From: Obrimoposthia wandeli
Taxonomy: Eukaryota
Direction: 5' to 3'
DNA length: 64,000 nucleotides
Assembly (NCBI GenBank): GCA_977020255.1
Contig: CDROCS010000506.1
Location: 1,612,001-1,676,000 of the forward strand
Shown in pieces: positions 16,699 through 62,801 of the stretch; positions within the stretch are counted from its first letter, which is position 1, and each line of letters opens with the position of its first letter. The translations under genes and the position numbers were made by a program. The notes under the pieces were generated by a model that worked only from the letters and a program-made list of their open reading frames with translations, did no database searches and was not told where the DNA came from.

Positions 16699-18816
16699 AT
16701 GGGTAGCACGGATTCTCTGAATCATATATTAATTAATGCCATTCAGCATTTGCCTATTGGCATATTTTGGAAAGATATTCACGGCCAATATTTAGGCTGT
16801 AATCAACATTGCCTGTCCCTGTTTGATTTGCCATCAGAGCAATTCATTATTGGTAAAACAGATACACAACTACAACCCGCATTAAAACAAAAACAGTTTC
16901 CCAACAAAGCCCTCATGCAAACCGATAAAGAGGCGCTAATCCACGGTCGTAGTGTCATTGCCAGAATGATGCAAATGGAAACGATCTATGGACAAGGTCA
17001 ATTTGAAATAACAAAAATTCCACTGCACAGCAACACAGGTAAGATCATCGGCTTACTCGGTATTGCCGTTGACGTATCCAGCAAGTTTCGCTCAGAACAA
17101 AAGTTACAAGAAAAAACCGCCTTACTTAACTCTATTTTTGATGCCCTACCTGACTTTGTCATTTACAAAGACATGCAAGGCCGTATCGTTGAATGTAACC
17201 GTGCGGCGCTCAAGTTAGCGAAAAAGAAGAAGGCTGATGTCATAGGTAAAACCATCACAGAAGTTCTGCCTACATCAACAGCGAAGGTCAGTATCGACTA
17301 TGATAGTCAGTTAAAATCAAACTATAAAAGTGCTAATTACAAAATGGAATTTGAATTAGCAGGCCGCCAAATATATGTTGATGTACACAAACATCCAGTA
17401 ATTCAGAATAATGAATTAGTAGGTACTGTGAGTATCTCTCGCGACATAAAAGAACGTCGTAATAGCTTAGAAAAGATTGCCACACTAACCAAGCACGATC
17501 AATTAACCCAACAATTAAATCGCACCACCTTTTTGCAAGAACTTGAAAATATCGATCAACAACGCGATTGGGGCATCATCCTCATTGATATTAAGAAGCT
17601 GGGAAAATTAAACAGCCAATACGGCGCTGAAATTGGCGACAAAGTCCTCGTTTATGTCGGCAAAATGATCAAGCTAGTAGCCCCGAAATCAGCGCATCTA
17701 TCTCGTATTCAAGGAGATAGATTTGCCATTTTAACCGATCAAGTCAGCTCACCAGATCAGCTTAATGCTCTATGCAATAAATTGATCGACAGGCTTAATA
17801 TGCAAGTCGCAATTCAAGGCCATGTCATTGATCTCGCTATCTGTATCGGTGCAGCAAATTACCCAGAGACGGTGCAGAATACCGACCAGTTACTCACTTG
17901 CAGTGAACAAGCTTTATTGCGGTCACGTAAACATAGAGAACAAAGTTACACCTTATTCGATCCGCTATTAGAAGCCCATGCCGAAGCAGAAAAGCGTTTA
18001 ATCGACGATTTAAAACACGCGATTAATAACAAATCCATCGATTTATATTACCAACCAGTCGTCGATGCAAACACGAAAGCTGTACTTGGCGTAGAAGCCC
18101 TTGCACGCTGGCATCACCCTGAACAAGGGCTAATCATGCCAATTAAATTCATCGAACTGGCTGAAAAAAACAACCTGATAGGACAATTGGGTGAAATGGT
18201 ATTAGAAAAAGCCTGTCAACAACTGGCAGAATGGCGTGAACACGACATTGATATCTTCATGGCGGTAAACTTATCGCCTATTCAATTTAATGATCCGCTG
18301 CTGATTAGCAAAATAAAATATTACATTGAACGCTATAATATTCCTGCTCAACGGCTTGAAATTGAAGTAACAGAGAGTGCACTAATGGAGTCGAATCAAA
18401 CTGCAGAAAATATGCTCGATGAATTAATTCAGCTCGGTGTACGCTTGTCTATCGATGATTTTGGGACAGGTTATTGCTCGTTATCTTATTTAAAAAATAT
18501 GCCTGCGCATAAACTAAAAATTGATAAATCATTTGTCGATGAACTTGAATTAGATAAAACCACAACGGCAATTACACGCTCAGTGATCAGCTTAGCCAGG
18601 GAGTTAAATATTACAGTGACAGCGGAGGGGGTCGAAGATGAATCACAGATGCAGTGGTTACAAGATCAACAATGTGATCAATTTCAGGGGTATTTATTTA
18701 GCCGCCCGTTACCGAGCGACAAATTTTGTCTGTGGTATAAAGCACACCATGCCACACACAATAATATTACTTATCAACAACCAACAAAAACAACGATGCC
18801 TTTGCAGGTATTATGA
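16699..18816 (+). CDS. PAS-PAS-GGDEF(degenerate)-EAL protein, probable c-di-GMP phosphodiesterase
   Basis: Two PAS/PAC domains; GGDEF site reads QGDRF; intact EAL (VEALARW), DDFGTGY, LKIDKSF, AEGVE. Confidence 0.88.
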   Translation: MGSTDSLNHILINAIQHLPIGIFWKDIHGQYLGCNQHCLSLFDLPSEQFIIGKTDTQLQPALKQKQFPNKALMQTDKEALIHGRSVIARMMQMETIYGQGQFEITKIPLHSNTGKIIGLLGIAVDVSSKFRSEQKLQEKTALLNSIFDALPDFVIYKDMQGRIVECNRAALKLAKKKKADVIGKTITEVLPTSTAKVSIDYDSQLKSNYKSANYKMEFELAGRQIYVDVHKHPVIQNNELVGTVSISRDIKERRNSLEKIATLTKHDQLTQQLNRTTFLQELENIDQQRDWGIILIDIKKLGKLNSQYGAEIGDKVLVYVGKMIKLVAPKSAHLSRIQGDRFAILTDQVSSPDQLNALCNKLIDRLNMQVAIQGHVIDLAICIGAANYPETVQNTDQLLTCSEQALLRSRKHREQSYTLFDPLLEAHAEAEKRLIDDLKHAINNKSIDLYYQPVVDANTKAVLGVEALARWHHPEQGLIMPIKFIELAEKNNLIGQLGEMVLEKACQQLAEWREHDIDIFMAVNLSPIQFNDPLLISKIKYYIERYNIPAQRLEIEVTESALMESNQTAENMLDELIQLGVRLSIDDFGTGYCSLSYLKNMPAHKLKIDKSFVDELELDKTTTAITRSVISLARELNITVTAEGVEDESQMQWLQDQQCDQFQGYLFSRPLPSDKFCLWYKAHHATHNNITYQQPTKTTMPLQVL

Positions 18817-19173
18817 TGCATCTTCTTCGAAGAAAGTGCCCCAACCGTCATAAGTAACATCTTGTTCAATAGACATTTTAAGTAGTTTTTCGATATCACG
18901 GGTAATTGTATCGATATCCAGTTCCGTTTCAACAACACAGTCGAATGCGAATACTGTTTGGCCGTCTTCCAGTTCAACTTCTTCAGGATCTGATACATCG
19001 TAGCCCAGCTTAAATGCAGCAATAGCCGCTTTTTCTAGCTGCGCAAAATCATCACCAGCAAAGTGATGTTCAATAGAATATACAGCATCAGGATCACTGC
19101 CATCTTCTAATAAGTTATCAATGATCTCTTCGGCTTCGACTTTCAGGTCGGCAAATTCTTTTTCAAAATCCAC
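18811..19173 (-). CDS. rraB: Regulator of RNase E activity RraB
   Basis: LLEDGSDPDAVYSIEHHF, YDGWGTFFE; highly acidic; near valS as in enterics. Confidence 0.93.
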   Translation of the reverse strand: MDFEKEFADLKVEAEEIIDNLLEDGSDPDAVYSIEHHFAGDDFAQLEKAAIAAFKLGYDVSDPEEVELEDGQTVFAFDCVVETELDIDTITRDIEKLLKMSIEQDVTYDGWGTFFEEDAS

Positions 19174-21429: not shown

Positions 21430-21458
21430 AAAAACCTCCGTGTTATGCGGAGGTTTTT
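21430..21458. terminator. Bidirectional terminator
   Basis: AAAAACCTCCG-N7-CGGAGGTTTTT between mrdA and the convergent small periplasmic protein gene. Confidence 0.8.
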
Positions 21459-21489: not shown

Positions 21490-21906
21490 TTAAGGTGTAA
21501 ATACTACTTTTACACTGTCATCCACTTCTGACGAGTCAATATAAGCAATCGCATTGGCATGTGATGCTACTTGGCTTTTAATCAGTGCTGATGAGCCTAT
21601 AGTCTTTGGCGGTTTACCTTTACCGGTAAACACTAAACGTGACCAATAAGCTTGTAGTTGTGAATCACTTTTCCCAGTCACACCCGAATGGAATTCATCA
21701 CGAATATCACTGCCTGTTGCTTGCTCAATAATTTGTGCTTTAGCGCCATTAGGTAATTTTTTCGACTTACCTAAATACAGTTTAGATACTTGTGATTTCG
21801 ATAATGTATCAGGACCTGTTGGGTTAGCAATAACCACAACACCAGCTTGTGCTACACCTGAAATTAATGCTGCTGTTAAGGCAACTTTAGCTAATAGTTT
21901 CATCAA
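21490..21906 (-). CDS. Small periplasmic protein, single-lobe binding-protein-like (copy 1)
   Basis: Signal peptide ending AQA, VVVIANP, KLYLGK, YWSRLVFTGKGKPP, NAIAYI; only 138 aa. Confidence 0.75.
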   Translation of the reverse strand: MMKLLAKVALTAALISGVAQAGVVVIANPTGPDTLSKSQVSKLYLGKSKKLPNGAKAQIIEQATGSDIRDEFHSGVTGKSDSQLQAYWSRLVFTGKGKPPKTIGSSALIKSQVASHANAIAYIDSSEVDDSVKVVFTP

Positions 21907-21914
21907 AGTTCTCC

Positions 21915-23054
21915 TTAAAATACTGCATCAAATGACAGTGTGTAAACCAATGTATCGTCGTTCTGACCAGCAATGTTTGGAGTCAAACCACCAGAGGTAT
22001 CACCAAAATCAGTTGCGTAAGTGACATCCGCTTTTAGTGCTAGGTTTGAGCTGATGTCATAACGCGTACCGATACTGTAAGCATTTCGCTTCCAATCAAA
22101 GCTTGGTTTGTATACAGTATTTCTCTCACTATCATCGGTCGTTTCAAGAAAAGCATAAGTCACATAAGGAGTGAAATCACTAATACGGTAACCTAGGGTA
22201 ATATAACCAGATTGAGTATCTGCATAATCACCTTCTACATCAGAAACGGCAAACTCTGAGATCGCAAGTAATGAACCGTTATCATAACTCAAACCAACAC
22301 CAGCAAAATAAGCATCTTCTGTATCAAAAAAGGTTGATCCGTCTTTACTATCAAGTGTTGTTTGGTAATACGTCGTGCGGAAAACCCATTCTTCATAAGC
22401 AAATGATGCTGAAGCGCCGAGAATATCTTTGTAGTCTACTTCGCCAAGCGCACCCGTGTCTCGGTCTGCATGACCATAACTTGCTTGCAGTGTGACTGCT
22501 ACATCACCCAAATCAAAATCATAAATAGCATCAATACCATCAAACGATGATAGTGGCACAATACTGTAAAGTTCACTTGGCGGGTTAGCCCAAGGTTGTG
22601 CGTAACCCACTTCTAGATAATCTGAATACATATACAGTGGTACACGTAAACGACCGATACGAGTAACAAAACCGTTATCAAAATCATGGCTTAAGAACGC
22701 CCATTCCATTTCGGTAGACCAATCATCACTACCACGAGCAACAAGCTGAGCAACAATTTTGGTTTGCTCTGTTAGTGCAAATGAACCTTGCAGACCAAGT
22801 TTACTGCCTTCAGAGAAATCGGCATCTTTATCATAGCCATTATATCCCGCATCATTATTTGCAATACCGACTTTACCAGTGAAGAAACCATTGATAGTCA
22901 TCCGATCAGATAGCGAATCATAAGAGCTCGCTTCCTTTAATATCGCTAATTCTTGCTCAAGTTGTGCCAGACGCTGTGCATCTGTTGTCGCAGCCATCGC
23001 AAATTGCGATGCACAAGCAACTGCAAGAGGTAGCATTATAAATGCTTTTTTCAT
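21915..23054 (-). CDS. Outer-membrane beta-barrel / porin-like protein (copy 1)
   Basis: Signal peptide, short N-terminal coiled coil, amphipathic strands, GRLRVPLYMYSDY, C-terminal BAM motif YTLSFDAVF. Confidence 0.8.
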   Translation of the reverse strand: MKKAFIMLPLAVACASQFAMAATTDAQRLAQLEQELAILKEASSYDSLSDRMTINGFFTGKVGIANNDAGYNGYDKDADFSEGSKLGLQGSFALTEQTKIVAQLVARGSDDWSTEMEWAFLSHDFDNGFVTRIGRLRVPLYMYSDYLEVGYAQPWANPPSELYSIVPLSSFDGIDAIYDFDLGDVAVTLQASYGHADRDTGALGEVDYKDILGASASFAYEEWVFRTTYYQTTLDSKDGSTFFDTEDAYFAGVGLSYDNGSLLAISEFAVSDVEGDYADTQSGYITLGYRISDFTPYVTYAFLETTDDSERNTVYKPSFDWKRNAYSIGTRYDISSNLALKADVTYATDFGDTSGGLTPNIAGQNDDTLVYTLSFDAVF

Positions 23055-23306
23055 CTAAAATCTCCTTATCCTAAAACACGTTAGTCCATTTTGCATTTAT
23101 TCAAAATTGGTCCTACAAGATTACATTATCGTTAACAATCTTATAACTTAGTATGACGGTATTATTCCTAGTTACATATTTTGTTTTGTAGATCTAAATC
23201 ACATTATGACAAATTGTTATCTAGCTACGGTTGTTTAGGTTGAACTTTCATTCTAAGCAGTAATCTATTAACAAAATTGAAACATTGTAAATACCTATTA
23301 TGTTAT

Positions 23307-23335
23307 AAAAAAATACCGAGCCTATAGCTCGGTAT
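23307..23335 (-). terminator. Terminator after second porin-periplasmic protein pair
   Basis: ATACCGAG-N7-CTCGGTAT with an A-run on plus (U-run on minus). Confidence 0.65.
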
Positions 23336-23363
23336 CATTGCAATCTATCATTCAGTTCAGTTA

Positions 23364-23777
23364 TTAAGGTTTAAATACCACTTTCACTGAAGCATCAAGA
23401 TCCGCTTCATCAATATAACCAATCGCGTTAATATTCGATGCGACTGAGTTCTTAACTGATGCTGACGAACCCAGTGACTTTGGCGGTTTGCCTTTACCTG
23501 TAAATACTAAGCGTGACCAGTATGCTTGTAACTGCGCATCACTTTTACCTGTGATTGAGCCATGAAAATCGTCACGAACAGCGCTACCTTTAGCTTGCTC
23601 TAGTACGCTCGCTTTACTGCCATTCGGTAATTTTTTAGATTTACCCAAATATAGTTTTGATACTTGAGATTTTGATAATGCATCCGGGCCACTTGGGTTA
23701 CCAATAACCACAACACCCGCTTGAGCAACACCAGAAAATAATGCCGTTGTTAGCACCACTTTAGCTAATAAATTCAT
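23364..23777 (-). CDS. Small periplasmic protein, single-lobe binding-protein-like (copy 2)
   Basis: 103 of 137 residues identical to copy 1 by manual count; same motifs. Confidence 0.75.
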   Translation of the reverse strand: MNLLAKVVLTTALFSGVAQAGVVVIGNPSGPDALSKSQVSKLYLGKSKKLPNGSKASVLEQAKGSAVRDDFHGSITGKSDAQLQAYWSRLVFTGKGKPPKSLGSSASVKNSVASNINAIGYIDEADLDASVKVVFKP

Positions 23778-23788
23778 TATTCTATTCC

Positions 23789-24970
23789 TTAAAATACTGC
23801 GTCAAATGAGATGGTGTAAACGATAGTGTCGTCGAACTCTTGGGTGTTAGCGTATGTAGGGCTAACATTTGATGCTAACGCCCCCGTAGTATCACCAAAG
23901 TCACCAGCGTAAGTCACATCTAATTTTAATGCTAAGTTAGCGCTAATATCATAACGCGTACCGACGCTATACGTGCTGCGCTGCCAAGTTAGCAACGTAG
24001 TATCTGGTTCACTTGTAACTCGTTTTTCATCATCCGTAGTTTTTAAATATGAATAACTCACGTAAGGCGTAAACGCCTCTATACGGTAACCCAGTGTGAT
24101 ATACGCAGACTCAGTATCAGAATAAGCACCTTCCACTTTTGAAATGGTATATTCAGAAATCGCAATTAATGAACCGTTATCATAGCTGACACCTGCACCA
24201 ATAAATTGGCCTTGATCATTTTTAAATGCGCCTAATAGAGGCAAGCCAGTATCTGCAGAATTTAAATCAGTTTGGAAATAAGTACCGCGGAATACCCACT
24301 CTTCATAAGAAAGCGTTGCAGATAGACCCGCAATATCGCTAAACTCAACATCAGTACCTACAGAGTTATCTTCCTTAGATGACTTGTCGCTACCATAACT
24401 TGCTTGCAATGCTAATATCGCATCACCTAGGTCATGCTGGTAAGTAACATCAACACCATTGAATGAAGTAATAGGTGCGATGGTATAAACGTCAGCAGGC
24501 GGTGTCGCCCAAGGCTGTGCATAGCCCACTTCTAAAAAGTCTGAATACATATATAACGGTAAACGTAAACGACCGACACGAGCAACAAAGCCGTTGTCAA
24601 AGTCATGGCTTAAAAAAGCCCATTCCATTTCCGGCGTCCAGTCATCGCTACCACGGCCAACTAGCTGTGCAACAATTTGAGTTTGATCAGTTAACGCGAA
24701 TGTACCTTGCAGACCCAATTTACTGCCGTCAGCAAAGTTAGGCGTTGTCGTGGCATTATCAAAACCAGCATCATTATTAGCCGCAACCATTTTGCCGGTA
24801 AAGAAACCATTAATAGTCATACGATCTGACAATGAATCATAAGAACTCTGCTCTTGTAACATCGCAAGTTCTTGTTCAACTTGTGCTAGGCGCTCTGCGT
24901 CCGTTGCTGCGTAAGCAAATTGCGTTGCACAAACTGCAGCCAGTGGTAACAACGTAAATACTTTTTTCAT
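23789..24970 (-). CDS. Outer-membrane beta-barrel / porin-like protein (copy 2)
   Basis: Paralog of 21915-23054; shares SSYDSLSDRMTINGFFTGK, MEWAFLSHDFDNGFV; ends YTISFDAVF. Confidence 0.8.
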   Translation of the reverse strand: MKKVFTLLPLAAVCATQFAYAATDAERLAQVEQELAMLQEQSSYDSLSDRMTINGFFTGKMVAANNDAGFDNATTTPNFADGSKLGLQGTFALTDQTQIVAQLVGRGSDDWTPEMEWAFLSHDFDNGFVARVGRLRLPLYMYSDFLEVGYAQPWATPPADVYTIAPITSFNGVDVTYQHDLGDAILALQASYGSDKSSKEDNSVGTDVEFSDIAGLSATLSYEEWVFRGTYFQTDLNSADTGLPLLGAFKNDQGQFIGAGVSYDNGSLIAISEYTISKVEGAYSDTESAYITLGYRIEAFTPYVSYSYLKTTDDEKRVTSEPDTTLLTWQRSTYSVGTRYDISANLALKLDVTYAGDFGDTTGALASNVSPTYANTQEFDDTIVYTISFDAVF

Positions 24971-25442
24971 CCATCAATCCTAGGTAAATAGCCAATAATC
25001 ATATTGTTTTATCAATTTTACTAAACATTGATAAAAACCAATAAAACCAATTTAAACAATACCTTATACTAACACAGTCACCGTAATTAGCGGAAATGAC
25101 ACACGCTTACAAATATGTAGAACAATCACTCTAATCGATGAGTAAGCGAGCGTTAAACATATAAGTAATTGAAGTTAGTCCTATGTAGGTTAATGAACTC
25201 AGAATCAATACTACTTAATAACCTAACAAAGCTCCGACTTTGTAGCCGTATTGTGAGTTACATCAAAATAGAATTTAAGGATAACGAAACAGGAAAGAAG
25301 GAAAAATAAGTCAGCTGGAATATAAATAGCTAAAGATAGCTTTGTGGCAGGGATACTCTATCCAGTATCTAGTAGCAATTTGCTTGCTCATAAAATTTCT
25401 CTCCTTAGAAATCTCGTGTAGCAAGCAAATTGTCGTTATTGA

Positions 25443-27062
25443 CTACACACTAAATTGATTTGTTGCTTGTCGTAATTTTTGTGTGGCAGCTTCGATAGCT
25501 TGTGTGATCTCGTCGAGTACTTCGGTATCTTCAGATACTTGCGTTGCTATCGAATGCGTTTCATCGATATAACCATGTATCATTTTTGACGTTTGAGCCT
25601 GCTCTTCTGTAGCAGAAGCAATTTGCTCATTGACTACGTTGATGGCTTCAACTTTAACCGAAATACTTGTCAGTGAATCACCAGCACTAGATGACTGCTC
25701 TACGCCCATATCCGCTTTACTCATCCCACGTTGCATCGCTTCCACAGCTCCTCGTGAAGCACGTTGCAATTCTTCCAATACTTGTTGGATTTCTTGAGTT
25801 GAGTCTTGGGTACGAGATGCTAAGGTTCGAACTTCGTCAGCAACTACCGCAAAGCCTCGTCCTTGTTCGCCCGCACGTGCCGCTTCAATAGCTGCATTTA
25901 AGGCTAACAAATTGGTTTGATCGGCAATACTGCGGATAGTATCGAGGATCAGCCCAACATTGCTAGTATGAGAGTCTAATTCGTCGATCACTTTTGAAGC
26001 TGTTTTTACTTCATCAGCCAGTTCGTGTATGGCTTCAATGGTCTTTTTAACAACCACGGTTCCGGTCTCTGCTTCGCTGTTTGCGCTGCTTGCTTCCGCA
26101 GAAGCATTAGATGCATAATCAGCAATATGCCTGACCGTTTCGAACATTTCATTCATCGAGCGAGAAACCTGGTCAATCGACTGACTTTGCTCTTGAATAC
26201 GAGATTTAGACGTACAGCTTGATGTTGCTAATTGCGTCGATGCTTGTGATAGCGAATCGATTGAATTAATGGTTTCGCTAATACTGCTATGCAGCTTATC
26301 TAAAAACTGGTTAAACCAATGAACCAAGTCACCCACTTCATCTTTATTTGCGTAATCAATACGTACCGTTAGATCACCGTCACCTTGCGCAATTGCTTGC
26401 AATGAATCAGATACTTTACGGATACTGCCAGTGATCGATACAGTCAGCCAATAACACACAGCCAGTACTAAAATAATCACACCGACACCTAACATCACAC
26501 CGCGGTTACGACTCTTATCAGAGCTCGCTAATGACGTTTCAATCAAGGCGGTGAAGTCTGCTTGGCTATCTTCTTTAAACTTACCGAGGTCAGCTAATAA
26601 CTTTTCTAAGTTAAGGCTATTTGTTTCAGCCAAATTAGACAAGTTATCCATAGATATAGAACCACTGATCAAGCCATTGGCTAAATATTTAGCAGAGTTG
26701 TAATACTCTTTAGCTTCACTCTTAATTAACAATAACTCGCTACGTTTATCCGGGTGGATAGAGTTAATAAAATCTAATTGGGTAATCAGGTCTGCATAAA
26801 CCTCATCCGCACTTAGCAACATATCTTCATCACCTATGGTGACAGATGTTTCAATTGCTTGCGTTATTTCAGAAATTTTACTATTACTGATCGTGGCGGC
26901 TTCAAGTACTGGATAATAAATGGCAGACAGTTGTGATAAACGTTCTTTATTTTCTTTCACCACCAGAATATTGGCGAACAGATAAGTTAAAAAACCCACG
27001 ACAACAACCGCCGAAAGAATACCGATCTTATGCTTGATTTTTAGTTGGGTGGAGAGTCCCAT
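25443..27062 (-). CDS. Methyl-accepting chemotaxis protein
   Basis: TM1, helical periplasmic domain, TM2, HAMP ([15 protein letters not shown]), hairpin tip [34 protein letters not shown]. Confidence 0.95.
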
Positions 27063-55036: not shown

Positions 55037-55702
55037 TTAAGACTGGAACGCGAGGGCTTTTTTCTCTAACTGTTTAAAGATTAATACCAAAATACCATTC
55101 ATACCCAAGTAGATAATACCTGCTGCAGAAAAGGCCATTAATGCATCATAAGTCTGACCATTAATTTGATTGGCATACCCCATCACATCCATGATGGTAA
55201 TTGAACTGGCTAATGAAGTCCCCTTCAATACCAAAATCACTTCATTAGAATAAGACGGTAATACACGACGTAAAGCATGTGGCACGATAACCGCTAGCGT
55301 TTGTCCACGAGTCATCCCCAATGCTTTACAGGCATCCCATTCACCACGCGGCACAGATTCAATCGCACCTTTAAATAACAACGATGAATAAGCGGCTGTA
55401 TTAAAGGCTAAGGCAATAATGGCGCAAATTTTTGCTTGGCTCAGGTAATCCCATAAAAAGCTATGTCTAATCACTTCAAACTGCGATGGACCGCTGTAAA
55501 CCAAAAATATTTGGATTAATAATGGCGTACCGGTAAAGATTAAAATAATAGTGCGAGCTAATAAATTTAATCCAGGGATCTTATTAACCATCGCTAGCGT
55601 TAAACCAACCGCAATAATAGAGCCAAACAATAAACTAAAAAAGGTGATTTCAAGCGTCGTGCTCAAGCCGTTAAATAATAACCAGAAGTGATCTAATGTC
55701 AT
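55037..55702 (-). CDS. artM: Arginine ABC transporter permease ArtM
   Basis: FTGTPLLIQIFL, LPSYSNEVILVLKGTSLAS. Confidence 0.9.
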   Translation of the reverse strand: MTLDHFWLLFNGLSTTLEITFFSLLFGSIIAVGLTLAMVNKIPGLNLLARTIILIFTGTPLLIQIFLVYSGPSQFEVIRHSFLWDYLSQAKICAIIALAFNTAAYSSLLFKGAIESVPRGEWDACKALGMTRGQTLAVIVPHALRRVLPSYSNEVILVLKGTSLASSITIMDVMGYANQINGQTYDALMAFSAAGIIYLGMNGILVLIFKQLEKKALAFQS

Positions 55703-56397
55703 TTTGCTACTCCGGCATCAAAACGATTAATGTAACTATCAAGGTGCTTTAACATCCATTGACTAATCAAGGTAATAATCAGGTAAATCGCCGCCGCCGC
55801 AACCAAAAAGGTAAACGGTTTATAGGTACTACCTGATAATAAATCCGCCTGCTTCATCAAATCAGTCACGCCGATTAACGACACTAACGCCGTATCTTTT
55901 AATAATACCATCCACTGATTGCCTAAACCCGGCAAGGCTAAACGCCATGCTTGTGGCAAGGTAATACGTAAGAAACAACGAACCGGTCCCATACCAAGTG
56001 CTTGTGCGCCTTGCTGCTGACCTTTTGGAACAGATTGAATTGCAGCGCGTAACGTTTGCGACGCATAAGAAGCAAAGATCAGTGACAATGCCACTACACC
56101 ACTCCAGAATGGACTGATGTCATAAAATTCATCGGTTAATAAAAACAGAATATGCGTGCCACCGAAAAACACAAAGAAGACAATCAAGATCTCAGGTAAG
56201 CCACGTAATATCGTAACAAATAGGCCAATCGGTTTAGCTATCAGTGGGTTCTTTTGCATTTCTGCAACACAGAATAAAATAGCGAGAACCAAGCCAACCA
56301 ACAAAGATGTTAGCGCTAGGCCAAGGGTGATTTTTGTTGCATCCAATAATAATTGAAGCTGCAAAAGATCCATAAGAACTCCGGAACGTAAAAACAA
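55699..56397 (-). CDS. artQ: Arginine ABC transporter permease ArtQ (start likely 56373)
   Basis: RGLPEIL, FASYASQTLR, LPGLGNQWMVLLKDTALVSLIG. Confidence 0.9.
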   Translation of the reverse strand: MFLRSGVLMDLLQLQLLLDATKITLGLALTSLLVGLVLAILFCVAEMQKNPLIAKPIGLFVTILRGLPEILIVFFVFFGGTHILFLLTDEFYDISPFWSGVVALSLIFASYASQTLRAAIQSVPKGQQQGAQALGMGPVRCFLRITLPQAWRLALPGLGNQWMVLLKDTALVSLIGVTDLMKQADLLSGSTYKPFTFLVAAAAIYLIITLISQWMLKHLDSYINRFDAGVAK

Positions 56398-56509
56398 AAA
56401 GTGCCCCTAAAAGGCACTTTAAAATGAATTATCTCGTGACCACAATAACTTGGCTATTATGCCTTGATATTGCAATGCAACTCAGGCCGAGATTAAACAC
56501 TGTTATATC

Positions 56510-57253
56510 TTATTTAGCAAAGTATTTTGCGTAAATCTTATCGTAAGTACCATTGGCTTTAATTGTTTGCAAACCTTTGTTCAGTTTAGCTAATAATTCA
56601 GCATTATCTTTACGTACTGCGATAGCAAAACCAGCACCAAAGTATTGTGCATCTGTAACGGCTTTACCGACTGTTTCGTAGTTACCATCACTGTGCTTGC
56701 TCAACCAATCGTGTGCAACTGCAGAATCTGCGAATACACCGTTGATACGACCATTTTTAAGGTCTAAAAATGCTTTTTGGTATGATGGGAAGTTAAGTAA
56801 TAATACTTTTTCTTTCGCATATGTGTCAGTCATATAAGCTTGGTGAGATGTACCATTTTGTACACCTACTGCTTTACCTGATAAATCTGCAACAACATTG
56901 TATTTGCCTTTTTCAGCAACAAGAACCGCTGAATTTTCATAATAGATATCAGAAAAATCAACTTGCTTTTGACGTGCTGGCGTTACATCCATTGCTGCAA
57001 TTGCGGCATCATAACGGCGGAACTTCAGGCTTGGGATCAAACTATCAAATGATTGATTAGCAAAACTACATTCAGCTTTTAATTCAGTACAAACTGCGCG
57101 AGCGATATCAATGTCGAAACCTTGAAATTCATTGTTTGCATCCATCATTTCAAATGGAGGGTATGTCGCTTCAGTAACGAATTTAATTTGTTCAGCTGCA
57201 GTTACTTGCGCCGCTGCTGACGTTAGAATTAATGCTGTTAGTAGTTTTTTCAT
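56510..57253 (-). CDS. artI: Arginine ABC transporter periplasmic binding protein (ArtI/ArtJ)
   Basis: Signal peptide, TEATYPPFE, FDSLIPSLKFRRYDA, VGVQNGT. Confidence 0.85.
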   Translation of the reverse strand: MKKLLTALILTSAAAQVTAAEQIKFVTEATYPPFEMMDANNEFQGFDIDIARAVCTELKAECSFANQSFDSLIPSLKFRRYDAAIAAMDVTPARQKQVDFSDIYYENSAVLVAEKGKYNVVADLSGKAVGVQNGTSHQAYMTDTYAKEKVLLLNFPSYQKAFLDLKNGRINGVFADSAVAHDWLSKHSDGNYETVGKAVTDAQYFGAGFAIAVRKDNAELLAKLNKGLQTIKANGTYDKIYAKYFAK

Positions 57254-57286
57254 TTGGTACGACCTTATTCCTAATGTTTAAATAAT

Positions 57287-58027
57287 CTAATGTTTTAAAT
57301 AGTTTGTAAATTGCGACGTTTGTGGATTTTGAAAGTGCTCAGCACCACCAAATTCAACAATCTCACCGCTTTCAAGATAACAAACCTGACTAGCTACTTT
57401 ACGCGCGAAGTCCACTTCGTGCGTTACAACAACTTGGGTAATACCGGTAATAGCCAGTGATTTAATGATTTCAGCTACTTGATTGGTGACCTCTGGATCT
57501 AACGCCGCAGTAGGTTCATCAAATAACAGTACTTCTGGTTTCATCATTAAAGCACGTGCAATCGCCACACGTTGCTGTTGACCACCAGATAAGGCTAATG
57601 GAAATACATCGGCTTTATCGGTTAATTGTAATTGCTCAAGGATCTTCATGGCCTCTTCACGAGCATGTTGTTTTGTTTGCTTTAAAATCTTAACTGGTGC
57701 TTCAATTAAGTTATCCATCACAGACATATGTGGCCATAGGTTGTATTGTTGAAATACCATCCCTACTTTCTGTCTTAACATCTGACTACGTTTGATTAAT
57801 TTCTTGTCACTTAACTTAGCTGAAAAATCAAATGTTTCACCAGCAATCGTAATTTCACCATTATCTGGTGTATCCAATAAATTAAGGACACGTAGTAAAG
57901 AACTCTTACCAGCACCACTTGGACCAAGCAGTACTAAGGTCTCGCCTTTCGCACATTTAAGGTCGATGTTTTGTAACACATCAAGTTGACCCCAAGATTT
58001 ACAGATGTTTTTTAGTTCGATGCTCAT
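57287..58027 (-). CDS. artP: Arginine ABC transporter ATPase ArtP (start at ATG 58027, MSIEL)
   Basis: [39 protein letters not shown]. Confidence 0.92.
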
Positions 58028-58034
58028 AATGATA

Positions 58035-58193
58035 ACTGAATATAATTGCACTAGATGCGATTATAATAACCGAATAAACTTCAAAATCAACATATATATT
58101 CACTTTAATTCGGTTTTTATGCAAAAATACCGAATTAGCCAAATAAGCTAGATAAAATATACCCTGCTGGTATCATATGCATAATTATTCAGT
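58035..58193. promoter_or_regulatory. ARG boxes in the artP/argR divergent promoter
   Basis: ACTGAATATAATTGCACT (58035-58052), TATGCATAATTATTCAGT (58176-58193), and a weaker tandem pair with 3-bp spacer at 58087-58125; consensus WNTGMAT-W4-ATKCANW. Confidence 0.75.
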
Positions 58194-58337
58194 TCATCGC
58201 GACTCAAGTTAATTTACTATTCACATGAATGATTTAGTCACTGACTTTATAATCATTTATAAAGTTAACTGTGAGTCCATTATAAGATCACATTGAATTT
58301 AGCATTCGTAACTTGAATTATAGATGAATCAACTGAC

Positions 58338-58811
58338 ATGGTAAAAAATATGAGTGAAAAACAAGATCTGTTAGTAAAAGCATTTAAAGGCTTACTTAAA
58401 GAAGAACACCTAGGCTCACAAAGCGAGATTGTCGATGCGCTTAAAGATCAAGGCTTTGATAGTGTTAACCAATCTAAAGTATCACGCATGCTCAGCAAAT
58501 TTGGTGCTGTACGCACGCGCAATGCCAAAGATGAAATGGTGTACTGTCTACCTGCAGAGCTAGGCGTACCAACTATTAGCAGCCAGTTAAAAAGCTTAGT
58601 ATTAGACATTAGCCATAATGAATGCCTGATTGTGATCCAAACCAGTCCTGGTTCGGCGCAATTAATCGCACGTTTATTAGATTCATTAGGGCGTACAGAA
58701 GGTATTTTGGGCACGATTGCTGGAGATGATACTATTTTCATCACCCCGACGAGTACCAGCATTATTACTGAAGTAGATAGTGCAGTAAAAGAATTGTTCG
58801 AATATATCTAG
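58338..58811 (+). CDS. argR: Arginine repressor
   Basis: [43 protein letters not shown]. Confidence 0.97.
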
Positions 58812-58842
58812 CAGTTAACACAAACAACTGCGAAGCTGAATT

Positions 58843-58879
58843 ACATGTTTGGCGCTGATATTTATCACGCCAAACATGT
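58843..58879. terminator. Long hairpin between convergent argR and fbpC
   Basis: ACATGTTTGGCG-C-TGATA-TT-TATCA-CGCCAAACATGT. Confidence 0.6.
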
Positions 58880-58887
58880 CTCTTTAT

Positions 58888-58938
58888 AAGTCCTTAACTG
58901 TTAAAAGTCCTTAACTGTTAAAGGTCCTTAACAGCTAA
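58888..58938. repeat. 17-bp tandem repeat, three units
   Basis: AAGTCCTTAACTGTTAA, AAGTCCTTAACTGTTAA, AGGTCCTTAACAGCTAA; the last unit overlaps the fbpC stop codon. Confidence 0.85.
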
Positions 58939-60005
58939 TCACGATCAAACAACACCAAGTCATGTGCTGCCACTGTCACATCAACCATATCGCCGACCTG
59001 CATAGGTTGTTGCATCGATACCGATAACTCTAAACAACCCTCTCCTAGCGTTTTATCTGCTAAACAGATCGTACAATGCGTCGTCATGCCTAAGAATTGT
59101 TGTCGGCTGATAGTAGCGATACCCTGCTCGACAACTTGTAACTGTAATTGTTGTGGGCGTATTGCTAACAGTTTTTGCTCGCCAACCGCTGCGGTTAATG
59201 CTTTTTTACTGCGAATCACACCTAATACTGTTTGCACACTGTGCGCATCTAATACCACTGCATCTAAGTAATTTACTTTACCTAAGAAATCAGCGACAAA
59301 GCGCGTAGCAGGTTGATTATATAACTCGCTTGGCGTACCCAATTGCTCAATCTTACCTTGATGAAAAACAGCTAAGCGATCCGCAAAAGCAAACGCTTCT
59401 TCTTTACTGTGAGTAACAAAGATCGCGCTCATGTTGTGCGATTTAAGTAAACCACGCATCTCTTCAATCAAATGATGACGCACTTGGCTATCAATATTAG
59501 AGAAAGGTTCATCCAATAATAATAACTCTGGAGAACAGGCTAACGCACGGGCAATCGCCACACGTTGTTGTTGACCACCTGATAACTGATGTGGATAGCG
59601 ATCAGCGAACTCGGTCAGATTAACTAATTTAAGCACATAGTCCAGCGTCTCTTTTTGCTTAGCCTTAGTTTGTTTATATTGGCTAAACAACACATTATCA
59701 GTCACGGTCAAATGCGGAAATAATGCATAATCCTGAAAAATCATACCGACATTACGTTTTTCAGGTGCTAAATTAAGATCGGCATTATCAACTACCTGAC
59801 CATTAATCTCGATACTACCTTGCGTTGGCGGTAATAACCCTGCAATCAATTTTAATGTCGTGGTTTTACCACAGCCGCTTGGCCCTAATAAACACAAGAT
59901 TTCATTTTTGCCTAGCTCTAGATCCAGTCCTGTTAAAATATCAACGCCAGCATAACTACAATGTAGATCTGAAATACGTAAAGCAAGTGAAGAAGATGTA
60001 GTCAT
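58935..60005 (-). CDS. fbpC: Fe(III) ABC transporter ATPase
   Basis: [43 protein letters not shown]-like tail. Confidence 0.9.
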   Translation of the reverse strand: MTTSSSLALRISDLHCSYAGVDILTGLDLELGKNEILCLLGPSGCGKTTTLKLIAGLLPPTQGSIEINGQVVDNADLNLAPEKRNVGMIFQDYALFPHLTVTDNVLFSQYKQTKAKQKETLDYVLKLVNLTEFADRYPHQLSGGQQQRVAIARALACSPELLLLDEPFSNIDSQVRHHLIEEMRGLLKSHNMSAIFVTHSKEEAFAFADRLAVFHQGKIEQLGTPSELYNQPATRFVADFLGKVNYLDAVVLDAHSVQTVLGVIRSKKALTAAVGEQKLLAIRPQQLQLQVVEQGIATISRQQFLGMTTHCTICLADKTLGEGCLELSVSMQQPMQVGDMVDVTVAAHDLVLFDRD

Positions 60006-61636
60006 CAGTGCTGTTGCTCCAAAGAACGGTTTAAGAAAATAAGCGGAATGAGTCCAACTAACACAATCACAATTGCCGCTAATGCCGCCTGCTCTAACAT
60101 TTCATCAGACGCAAACTGGAAGACGTAAGTAGCCAATGTTTCATAGTTAAATGGACGTAATAATAAGGCCGTTGGCAGTTCTTTCATTGATTCAATGAAC
60201 ACCAACAGAAAACCAGCCAGTATGCCTTTACGGATCAGGGGAATATGCACTTTACGGATCATACTATTCGGGCTGTGCCCCAATGTGCGCGTCACCATAT
60301 CCAACGACGGTGATATCTTATCAATACTGCTTTCTATCGAGCCCACGGCAATCGCCGAAAAACGAATAAGATACGCAAAAATAAGCGCAAAGGTGGTGCC
60401 AGTAAAGACTAAACCAGGTGTCCAATCCCATAACAGCTCAGTGATATCATTGAGTAGAAAATCAGCCGAGGTCAGCGGAATAATAATACCAATCGCCAAT
60501 ACCGTACCAGGTAATGCATAACCCATCGTACTAATACGTGCCGGAATAGCGGCATATTTAGTACCGACTAAACGGCGATACAACCCGAGTAATACAGCGC
60601 AGAAAACCGCTAAGCTCGCCACAATAAGTGCCAAGACTAAACTGTTAGCACTGTATTGGAAAAATTCTGCGGTCCAAGATTCTGCAAAATAGTGCCAAGC
60701 ATAATTTACCAACACCGCAAACGGTAATAAGAAACCAGCGAACACCAATAACCAACACCACGCCATTGCCAGTACTTTTGCACAGCCAGTTAACTGATAA
60801 CGTATTTCTTGTTCATGCAGCATGCTTTTTTGAAATACTTGCTGTTTACGGCGAGCGAAACGCTCTAAACCGACAAACAGTAAAACCACCGATAAAGTCA
60901 TCACCGATAATTGCGCAGCCGCCGTTAAACTGCCGTAACCAATCCAAGTATCGTAAACCGCAGTAGTTAAGGTATTAACAGCAAAATAATTCACCGTAGC
61001 AAAATCAGCCACAGTTTCCATTGCGACTAATGATAGACCTACTGCGATAGCAGGACGTGCAAGCGGTAGCGATACGCGTAAACAACTCGATAGCGGTGAG
61101 CTACCTAACATACGACTGGCTTGAATAAGGCTGGTTGATTGTTCGAGAAATGAGGTACGCGCCAATAAGTACAGGTAAGGATATAATACTAAGGCTAAAA
61201 CGGTTGCAGCGCCGGGAATAGTTCGAATATCAAAGAACCAATAATCACTGGCATTTTCCCAACCAAATACACCACGTAAAGCAATTTGTACTGGCCCTGC
61301 ATAATCAAACATATCAGTATAAATATAAGCAACGATATACGCAGGCATCGCCATCGGTAACATCAGCGCCCACTGTAAACTTTTACGCCCGGGAAAATCA
61401 CACATGGCAATAAGCCAAGCAGCAGGTAAGGCTATTACGCTACTAATTAAGCAAACCAGAAAAACAAGAATAAGGGTATTTTGTACATAATCGAGGAGAA
61501 CGGTATCAATAAGATGCTGAAAAACATCTGCACTGGGGCCTATAGCTTGATAAAACAAAGCTGCAATAGGTAGCGCTAACATGATCGCAATAAACCAACT
61601 ACTAGAATGCCAAGAAATGGCTAACTTATGATTCAT
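60005..61636 (-). CDS. fbpB: Fe(III) ABC transporter permease
   Basis: Duplicated permease domains, LYPYLYLLAR, MKELPTALLLRPFN. Confidence 0.9.
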   Translation of the reverse strand: MNHKLAISWHSSSWFIAIMLALPIAALFYQAIGPSADVFQHLIDTVLLDYVQNTLILVFLVCLISSVIALPAAWLIAMCDFPGRKSLQWALMLPMAMPAYIVAYIYTDMFDYAGPVQIALRGVFGWENASDYWFFDIRTIPGAATVLALVLYPYLYLLARTSFLEQSTSLIQASRMLGSSPLSSCLRVSLPLARPAIAVGLSLVAMETVADFATVNYFAVNTLTTAVYDTWIGYGSLTAAAQLSVMTLSVVLLFVGLERFARRKQQVFQKSMLHEQEIRYQLTGCAKVLAMAWCWLLVFAGFLLPFAVLVNYAWHYFAESWTAEFFQYSANSLVLALIVASLAVFCAVLLGLYRRLVGTKYAAIPARISTMGYALPGTVLAIGIIIPLTSADFLLNDITELLWDWTPGLVFTGTTFALIFAYLIRFSAIAVGSIESSIDKISPSLDMVTRTLGHSPNSMIRKVHIPLIRKGILAGFLLVFIESMKELPTALLLRPFNYETLATYVFQFASDEMLEQAALAAIVIVLVGLIPLIFLNRSLEQQH

Positions 61637-61781
61637 GGACGGAAAAATAACTCCTGTTTAGATACGCGAAAAGGTTGGCGAGTTACAAAGTAACTTTACC
61701 AACCTTTAAATCAGTCTATTAACAACTCATTAAGCCGTAATATCAACTGTTAACCCCTAACAATTTAGGGGTTTATGTATT

Positions 61782-62801
61782 CTACAAGTCGAACTTAACT
61801 TCATCAAGTAGTCTTAGTGCAGCTTTACGATGTTTTGCAATCTCTGCTACTGGCATGTAGTCCGCATTGAACTCGCCCCAAGATGAAACTAACTCAGATG
61901 CTTTGATACCGGCTTTAACAGGGTATTCCATGTTAACTTCAGCATACATTTCTTGTGCTTTCGCGCCAGATAGGTATTCCATTAGTTTAACGGCATTACC
62001 TTTATTCGGTGCATATTTCGCTAATACCATACCAGAAACATTCACGTGCGCGCCGTGGTTTTCTTGGTTAGGGAAGTTAATGTTAACCGCTTCAGCCCAA
62101 GCAACTTGCTTTGGATCACTCAGCATTTTGCCTAAGTAGTAGCTGTTACCAAGTGCAATGCTACAAACGCCTTCTTTAATTGCTTTAACTTGCGCACGAT
62201 CGTTACCTTGTGGTTTACGTGCTAAGTTAGCTTTAAGACCTTCTAACCATACTTTAGCTTCTGCTTCACCGTGATGCGAAATCATTGATGAAATAAGTGC
62301 TACATTGTATGGATGTTTACCTGAACGAGTACAGATTTGACCTTTATATTTAGGGTCTGCAAGTTCTTCATAAGTGATGTTAGCAACGTCGCCATATACT
62401 TCACGTGATGTGTAAATATTACGAACACGTGATGTAAGTGCAAACCATTCGCCATCAGGGTCACGGTATTGCGCTGGAATGTTATCTTCTAATACGTCGC
62501 TTGATACAGGCTGTGTAACACCGAAATCAACAGCTTCAACTAAGCGGCTAATGTCTGTTGTTAGTAATAGATCGGCTTTTGATAAGCGACCTTCACGTTT
62601 CATTCTATCTGCAAGTCCTTTCTTAGCAAATACAATATTGACCTTTACACCAGTATCTTTAGTGTATTGTTCAAGGATCGGATTAAGCAAATTCGCTTGG
62701 CGATTTGAATAAATATTAACTTCTTCACTAGCAAAAGCCGTTGCGCTCATTAGTGACGTTGTTAGTGCCAAAGCAGATAAACCAAATATTCCCTTTTTCA
62801 T
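61782..62801 (-). CDS. fbpA: Fe(III) ABC transporter periplasmic binding protein (FbpA/FutA)
   Basis: EEVNIYSNRQ, RSGKHPYN, GNDRAQ, GNSYY di-tyrosine iron ligands. Confidence 0.92.
   Translation of the reverse strand: MKKGIFGLSALALTTSLMSATAFASEEVNIYSNRQANLLNPILEQYTKDTGVKVNIVFAKKGLADRMKREGRLSKADLLLTTDISRLVEAVDFGVTQPVSSDVLEDNIPAQYRDPDGEWFALTSRVRNIYTSREVYGDVANITYEELADPKYKGQICTRSGKHPYNVALISSMISHHGEAEAKVWLEGLKANLARKPQGNDRAQVKAIKEGVCSIALGNSYYLGKMLSDPKQVAWAEAVNINFPNQENHGAHVNVSGMVLAKYAPNKGNAVKLMEYLSGAKAQEMYAEVNMEYPVKAGIKASELVSSWGEFNADYMPVAEIAKHRKAALRLLDEVKFDL

Follow-up and report, generated by a model that had tools for sequence, protein, structure and literature searches.

The stretch of DNA analysed here (the window, 64,000 nucleotides (nt) of contig CDROCS010000506.1 in the Obrimoposthia wandeli assembly GCA_977020255.1) raises the question of what joins a chemoreceptor gene to two genes for outer membrane barrels and two for small secreted proteins. 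At 21490-27062 on the minus strand, the ORF list of the window contains five open reading frames (ORFs) encoding a methyl-accepting chemotaxis protein (MCP) and two cassettes, each consisting of a barrel (B) and a small protein (s) behind it, B1-s1 and B2-s2; the nearest protein matches to these genes are from Moritella, at 90-99% identity, and the window is assigned to a species of that genus. An earlier note on this DNA described five co-oriented genes with the MCP followed by two barrel > small protein cassettes, which agrees with our finding of all five on the minus strand, and proposed that barrel and partner relay a ligand or "surface signal" to the MCP. Our tentative answer, somewhat short of probable, is that s acts as a co-receptor of the binding-protein type that comes with its own porin, in the manner of LamB-MBP-Tar, and without a transporter.

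The evidence that carries this reading starts from the sensor domain of the MCP. The protein (539 amino acids (aa); 25443..27062, minus strand) has the architecture of its class, with two transmembrane (TM) segments, placed by hydropathy on an orthologue at residues ~17-35 (TM1) and ~188-206 (TM2), a periplasmic domain between them, and HAMP (Pfam, 2.3e-12) and MCP signalling (MCPsignal, 1.3e-40) domains behind. The periplasmic sensor domain (residues ~36-186; 26505..26957, minus strand) had no Pfam match and only weak matches in a search of the PDB, to four-helix bundles. It shares full-length homology with 33 MCPs of the loci surveyed below and represents a family of helical bundles that is so far unclassified and accompanies porin/small-protein cassettes. 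A profile of the domain, searched against 1.84 billion cluster representatives, retrieved 1,307 proteins with E up to 0.001, of which 528 remained with the limit at 1e-10. Nearly all sensor-domain proteins are MCPs of 536-545 aa, and a few of 734-781 aa are kinases composed of sensor, (HAMP), Hpt and HATPase_c domains. We found no Pfam or NCBIfam model for either s or the sensor domain; the Pfam copy searched did not contain PF28019, a family precomputed on many Moritella orthologues of the MCP (P0242, P0244 and others), which may already define the sensor domain.

Relatives of s were found at >586 loci in a scan of 185,579 species genomes (one genome per species), and the s-centred neighbourhood survey covers 81 loci, with ORFs called by a simple, crude caller and then clustered; the loci are related to one another. 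They contain 82 B>s pairs, in which the two genes lie a median of 11 nt apart, and s lacks a barrel in only 1 complete context, so tightly are the two genes coupled; the porin-s pair is the constant core of the module. The earlier note had expected homologous pairs to be enriched for signalling genes rather than ABC (ATP-binding cassette) transporters, and both expectations hold in the survey. No ABC permease or ATPase stands beside a B-s pair in any of the 81 loci, where the sole ABC-type ATPase fold is UvrA. Among the MCP ORFs, 35 of 39 occupy one of the 146 cassette-flanking slots (hypergeometric p ~1e-26, uncorrected for relatedness). The same 81 loci show no conserved catabolic gene beside the pairs, and the outer neighbours are variable housekeeping genes.

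All 33 sensor-sharing MCPs lie ≤720 bp from a B-s pair, in 26 distinct flanking-gene contexts. By position, 17 were classed as upstream co-oriented, 5 as upstream divergent, 8 as downstream convergent and 3 as downstream co-oriented; one of these last (L016) is actually upstream, its MCP ORF overlapping the barrel ORF. The hosts of the 33 MCP blocks belong to a dozen or more gammaproteobacterial families, with one verrucomicrobial metagenome-assembled genome (MAG) in addition. Because the flanking contexts, the orientations and the host families vary to this degree, the MCP and its B-s pair move as a unit and their linkage is not inherited synteny.

Approached from the other side, the linkage is just as close. 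For ten distantly related sensor-domain proteins we inspected the surrounding contig, and 9 of them were informative: 6 MCPs, with at most 27-36% identity to the MCPs seen earlier, and 3 HAMP-Hpt-HATPase kinases. Each of the nine (9/9) has an adjacent s (130-149 aa) and an adjacent barrel (~360-430 aa), as checked with hidden Markov models (HMMs) of our own where contig DNA existed and by gene sizes alone in two contigs without DNA. At one locus (L081), the B-s pair is bracketed by two sensor-domain kinases, a hybrid HisKA kinase and an Hpt kinase, and behind the latter come a CheX-like protein and a response regulator of a single domain. At another (L086), the barrel is of a different type, yet s and the sensor MCP remain together. 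Taking both surveys, the sensor domain has a barrel and s alongside it in 42 of 42 sampled cases (33 + 9). Sensor domain and B-s pair co-occur reciprocally and independently of context, and the sensor domain is linked to the cassette regardless of its output domain. Because the linkage holds across MCP, Hpt-kinase and HisKA-kinase outputs, it suggests that the sensor works with the cassette, and we regard this as our strongest evidence.

Two side observations concern these distant loci. The membrane kinases that combine the sensor domain with Hpt and HATPase_c (L081:765-9676, L082, L084 and L085) lack HisKA and amount to a CheA-like core on a transmembrane receptor. The protein that replaces the porin at L086 (2638-3756), next to s and the sensor MCP, has 372 aa, a signal peptide and the ending ...LLF; it lies outside the B family and has no Pfam match.

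What kind of protein, then, is s? Both copies, s1 (137 aa; 23364..23777, minus strand) and s2 (137 aa counted from ATG 21903; 21490..21903, minus strand), carry a leader of the signal-peptidase-I type (..VAQA-G) without a lipobox cysteine and are predicted to be secreted. Neither matched Pfam, and Pfam together with NCBIfam gave no usable family for the small proteins or the barrels. The AlphaFold2 (AF2) model of s2 (predicted local distance difference test (pLDDT) 88.9) covers one lobe of a binding protein, and Foldseek superposes it on one lobe of PstS (4exl, 1twy and 4gd5; E 3e-8 to 5e-7, root-mean-square deviation 2.0-2.3 A over ~120 columns). The profile of the s family in turn matches the PstS proteins of the PDB at E 1.7e-8. 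On the strength of this profile match and the superposition of the model on a single lobe, we identify s as a lobe 2 of the PstS type that stands on its own, in line with the earlier suggestion that it resembles one lobe of a type II binding protein. At 137 aa it falls well below the ~250-330 aa of the two-lobe, Venus-flytrap PstS.

Such proteins are labelled "phosphate ABC substrate-binding protein", a label that the earlier note doubted, and rightly so. The PstS model TIGR02136 scores 25.7 bits on s, compared with a cut-off of 206.6, and the alignment is confined to positions 117-227 of the 295 in the profile. In E. coli PstS, lobe 2 binds phosphate through R135, D137, S139, G140 and T141. 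In the alignment, SREDGSGT of 4q8r stands over EQATGSDI in s2 and EQAKGSAV in s1, and among the PstS phosphate ligands only the serine is retained; the equivalents of R135, D137, G140 and T141 are replaced by Q, T/K, D/A and I/V, respectively, in a loop that is variable across the s family. The label is unfounded because of this low score, the single lobe, the lost phosphate ligands and the missing pstCAB genes, and any ligand of s is probably not orthophosphate. What the s family does keep is an invariant block that PstS does not have, Q..YWS(R/K)L(V/I)FTGKG.PP. Paralogous s pairs diverge most at positions 65-67, the equivalent of the S139-T141 ligand loop of PstS.

The barrels B1 (393 aa; 23789..24970, minus strand) and B2 (379 aa; 21915..23054, minus strand) share 65% identity and belong to one family. 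In both, we see the features listed in the earlier note: a signal peptide ending in A-x-A, a heptad-like, coiled-coil-like helix (ATDAERLAQVEQELAMLQEQ and ATTDAQRLAQLEQELAILKE) and a C-terminal Phe, in the ending ...FDAVF. The AF2 model of B2 (pLDDT 84.5) has 16 strands, a helix-bearing loop (138-169) at the position of L3 and a helix at 25-42. Foldseek matches it to V. cholerae OmpT, chitoporin, Omp32, PorB, OmpF and OprP (E 2e-15 to 1e-11); OprP and OprO are both among the fold matches, and general porins match better than OprP. The B model thus has the signal peptide, 16 strands, L3 and C-terminal aromatic residue of a classical general porin, and its predicted fold is that of a diffusion porin and not of a receptor, in disagreement with the outer membrane receptor proposed earlier. 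Within the family, 80 of the 86 members end in F, and the best-conserved stretch is strand 5 with L3 (GRLR.P.Y.YSDYL.VGYA.PW..PP). Against Pfam at E ≤10, the window barrels gave a sole match, to OMP_b-brl at 0.47; some homologues carry a precomputed PF13609 (Porin_4).

The N-terminal coiled-coil-like extension covers residues 22-41 of B1 (24848..24907, minus strand) and 22-42 of B2 (22929..22991, minus strand). The earlier note listed it for each barrel. Of the 79 family members that could be evaluated, only 11 have it (Moritella, Neiella and a few others), so we rejected it as a defining feature of the B family and regard it as lineage-specific.

These parts can be assembled into a mechanism. 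The 16-stranded porin B would admit a solute into the periplasm, where s, translated just behind B, would stay as the partner of B and capture or report the solute; s would then dock on the membrane-distal tip of the periplasmic helical bundle of the chemoreceptor. Because no ABC transporter is involved, s would serve sensing only, and the two cassettes of the window would give one receptor two ligand specificities. Chemoreceptors that depend on a substrate-binding protein (SBP) are established, MBP docking on Tar and phosphate-loaded PstS on CtpL (PMC8050422). Three points fit this assembly. The conserved non-core residues of the sensor, G77-E78 and G134-D137, lie near alignment gaps, where a four-helix bundle would be expected to have its two loops at the membrane-distal apex. 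One receptor often has duplicated cassettes next to it, and 13 loci have two s genes by our own ORF calls. The paralogues diverge at s 65-67, as described above.

Several observations weigh against s as a co-receptor docking on the sensor. The survey rests on the 80 loci, out of >586, that are most similar to Moritella. In ~40% of the informative loci, the B-s pair has no signalling neighbour, and the relay to the MCP proposed in the earlier note is only partly borne out: a shared sensor domain does stand beside the pairs, but about two-fifths of the pairs have no receptor neighbour at all. Some pairs adjoin dCache receptors, which usually bind ligands directly. The invariant surface of s is equally conserved with or without an adjacent receptor, and we sought residues of a docking patch conserved only where a sensor is adjacent and found none. 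Because of this equal conservation, the primary and constant partner of s is probably the porin and not the MCP, and what the invariant block faces is more likely the porin, or else a ligand common to the whole family, than the sensor, which is poorly conserved. Finally, a single lobe cannot by itself close on a ligand in Venus-flytrap style. A different use of the same parts would accommodate a half site: porin, single-lobe protein and sensor domain may form a physical bridge from outer to inner membrane, in which the half site of s is completed by the porin or the sensor, and which serves as a portable input for chemoreceptors, Hpt-type kinases and HisKA kinases. We consider this bridge possible but unlikely.

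The clustering could also come about without any contact between the parts. Under such a shared-ligand explanation, the B-s pair would be a device for uptake or retention (a porin with a periplasmic sink), the receptor would bind the solute directly, and the genes would lie together through co-inheritance or co-regulation. That B-s forms the constant core and is often found by itself agrees with this, as do the dCache and 4HB_MCP_1 receptors among its neighbours, typically direct ligand binders, and the separate transcription units of MCP and cassettes in the window (see below). It is, however, at odds with the lack of any conserved inner-membrane transporter or catabolic gene beside B-s, and with the presence of barrel and s in every sampled sensor case, an association tighter than is usual for mere substrate sharing. 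At L086, moreover, the barrel type is swapped and s and the sensor stay paired. We judge this explanation unlikely, without dismissing it. We give still less weight to sensing of the porin state or the envelope, in which s would sit on the periplasmic face of the porin and a perturbation of the porin or the outer membrane would release or recruit it and so change the activity of the receptor, much as in RcsF-OmpA/C/F-IgaA or YfiB-YfiR-YfiN. An invariant s surface that is independent of receptor presence, the tight translational coupling of B and s, and the fact that the module feeds kinases as well as MCPs all suit that idea. However, s is not a lipoprotein and had no match to the DUF4154 (YfiR) signature in our Pfam search, the duplicated cassettes diverge at the equivalent of the ligand loop, which is a better fit to chemical specificity, and an MCP as output is better matched to a chemical gradient than to envelope stress.

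The function implied by the annotation, a small PstS with a phosphate porin as an accessory of phosphate uptake, is very improbable. It can draw on the weak PstS homology of s and on OprP and OprO among the fold matches of B. Set against these are the single lobe, the score far below the TIGR02136 cut-off, the replacement of four ligand equivalents, the absence of pstCAB, the greater closeness of B to general porins than to OprP, and a search upstream of both cassettes that found no Pho box. A role in phosphate uptake fails every defining test except fold homology.

Among known systems, the co-receptor reading stands closest to LamB-MBP-Tar, which likewise combines a specific outer membrane porin, a periplasmic protein of the binding type and a four-helix-bundle chemoreceptor with a docking tip. 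MBP, however, is a two-lobe SBP that also feeds MalFGK2, and its genes are not clustered with tar, whereas in our module s is a single lobe, no locus has a transporter and the three genes move as a block. The PstS-CtpL pair of P. aeruginosa low-phosphate taxis (PMC8050422) is alike in using a protein of the PstS family (PBP_like_2) as MCP co-receptor. CtpL, however, carries an HBM domain, and its partner is a complete PstS that belongs to PstSCAB; s amounts to lobe 2 without the phosphate ligands, and the sensor domain of our module is from another family. In the chitoporin-CBP-ChiS system of Vibrio, and in TorT-TorS, LuxP-LuxQ and NspS-MbaA, a periplasmic binding protein controls a membrane kinase or an enzyme of cyclic di-GMP metabolism, and the sensor domain of our module likewise occurs on kinases. 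The binding proteins of these four systems are full-size, and in none of them is the gene of the binding protein directly coupled to a porin gene of its own.

Relays across the envelope offer a second set of parallels. RcsF-OmpA/C/F-IgaA and YfiB-YfiR-YfiN each link an outer membrane protein, a small protein exposed to the periplasm and a signalling protein of the inner membrane. RcsF and YfiB are lipoproteins, YfiR belongs to DUF4154, and these systems sense envelope stress and not a solute, whereas s is a soluble PstS lobe by its predicted fold. In the TonB-dependent FecA-FecR-FecI system, too, an outer membrane barrel passes a signal to a protein of the inner membrane, by way of the periplasmic domain of the latter. 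That system requires TonB energy, a sigma/anti-sigma pair and a plugged transducer of 22 strands that carries an N-terminal signalling domain; the module has none of these. We place the module in binding-protein-mediated sensing, with a real chance that it is the more unusual physical trans-envelope relay instead. In the literature that we searched, we found no published description of it.

Should s prove to act as a co-receptor, the module would be the first sensing system of the binding-protein type that has a porin of its own and lacks a transporter, and also the first built on one SBP lobe. A sensing mechanism would then be at hand for orphan chemoreceptors and kinases, of which marine Gammaproteobacteria have a large group, and the compact three-gene unit would be useful for ligand discovery and biosensor design. 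The three component families are at present unnamed or misnamed, as "phosphate ABC transporter substrate-binding protein", "hypothetical protein" or a generic MCP, although s occurs at >586 places in the species genomes scanned and the sensor domain forms >500 clusters at 50% identity. At minimum, the annotation of hundreds of "PstS" genes needs correcting.

Within the window, the five genes are probably not a single operon. Gaps of 472 nt after the MCP gene and 309 nt after s1, together with a strong terminator hairpin behind each s gene, point to three transcription units, MCP, B1-s1 and B2-s2. The terminator-like hairpin behind s1 (23312..23336, minus strand) has an 11-bp stem and a T run; that behind s2 (21430..21458) lies in the interval between s2 and the convergent PBP2 gene and appears to be bidirectional. 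The earlier note placed the start of each partner 8-11 bp after its barrel gene. For s1, the gap of 11 nt past B1 stands. For s2, the 8 nt follow from TTG 21906, the start in the ORF list, and ATG 21903, which gives 11 nt, is more likely the start because GGAG lies 7 nt before it.

The neighbouring genes are unrelated or have housekeeping roles: the locus is flanked on one side by a Dus-family tRNA-dihydrouridine synthase and a LysR regulator and on the other by PBP2 and a cytoplasmic PAS-GGDEF-EAL protein. As noted earlier, no ABC permease or ATPase lies nearby: the closest ABC genes in the window are ~28 kb off, at 55037-62801 on the minus strand. They form two complete importers that are unrelated to the module. 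One has a full-size SBP_bac_3 protein of its own with two permeases and an ATPase; in the second, an ATPase is joined by a double permease of 543 aa. Genes for cytoplasmic PAS-GGDEF-EAL proteins occur ≤10 kb away in 21 of the 81 surveyed loci. We did not take them as evidence because they have no periplasmic part and their frequency, by rough estimate, is near that expected from their abundance in genomes of this kind.

Different periplasm-sensing proteins flank other B-s pairs in the survey. Two-TM class III nucleotide cyclases do so at 5 loci and two-TM histidine kinases at 4, and there are also a dCache MCP, a 4HB_MCP_1 MCP and a dCache GGDEF-EAL protein. The sensor domains of these neighbours are unrelated to that of the MCP; the idea that the class III cyclases and histidine kinases share it was rejected (hhalign probability 0.1). 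The cyclases (L026:7344-8696, L028:7234-8679, L042, L045 and L054) are two-TM class III adenylate/guanylate cyclases with a periplasmic domain of ~110 aa, encoded directly upstream of B>s and co-oriented with it, in the Thalassolituus/Bacterioplanoides group. At three further loci (L039:5648-8532, L032 and L070), B-s adjoins three conserved genes, for a Ras-like small GTPase, an OmpA-domain protein of 597 aa and a protein of 178 aa, with a cytoplasmic GGDEF-EAL protein encoded behind them.

Two observations concern Moritella itself. A 120-aa ORF (family f65) at 18811-19173 of the window, minus strand, is convergent with the PAS-GGDEF-EAL gene, with a 3' overlap of 6 nt, and is kept in two other Moritella loci. 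The slot between the dus-like gene and PBP2 differs within the genus (L001:4453-10414 and L002:3420-5062, compared with 21490-27062 of the window): one Moritella MAG has there an MCP, a distinct 454-aa barrel paralogue, two small proteins, an orthologue of B2 and an s gene, in this order, and another has a single cassette without an MCP.

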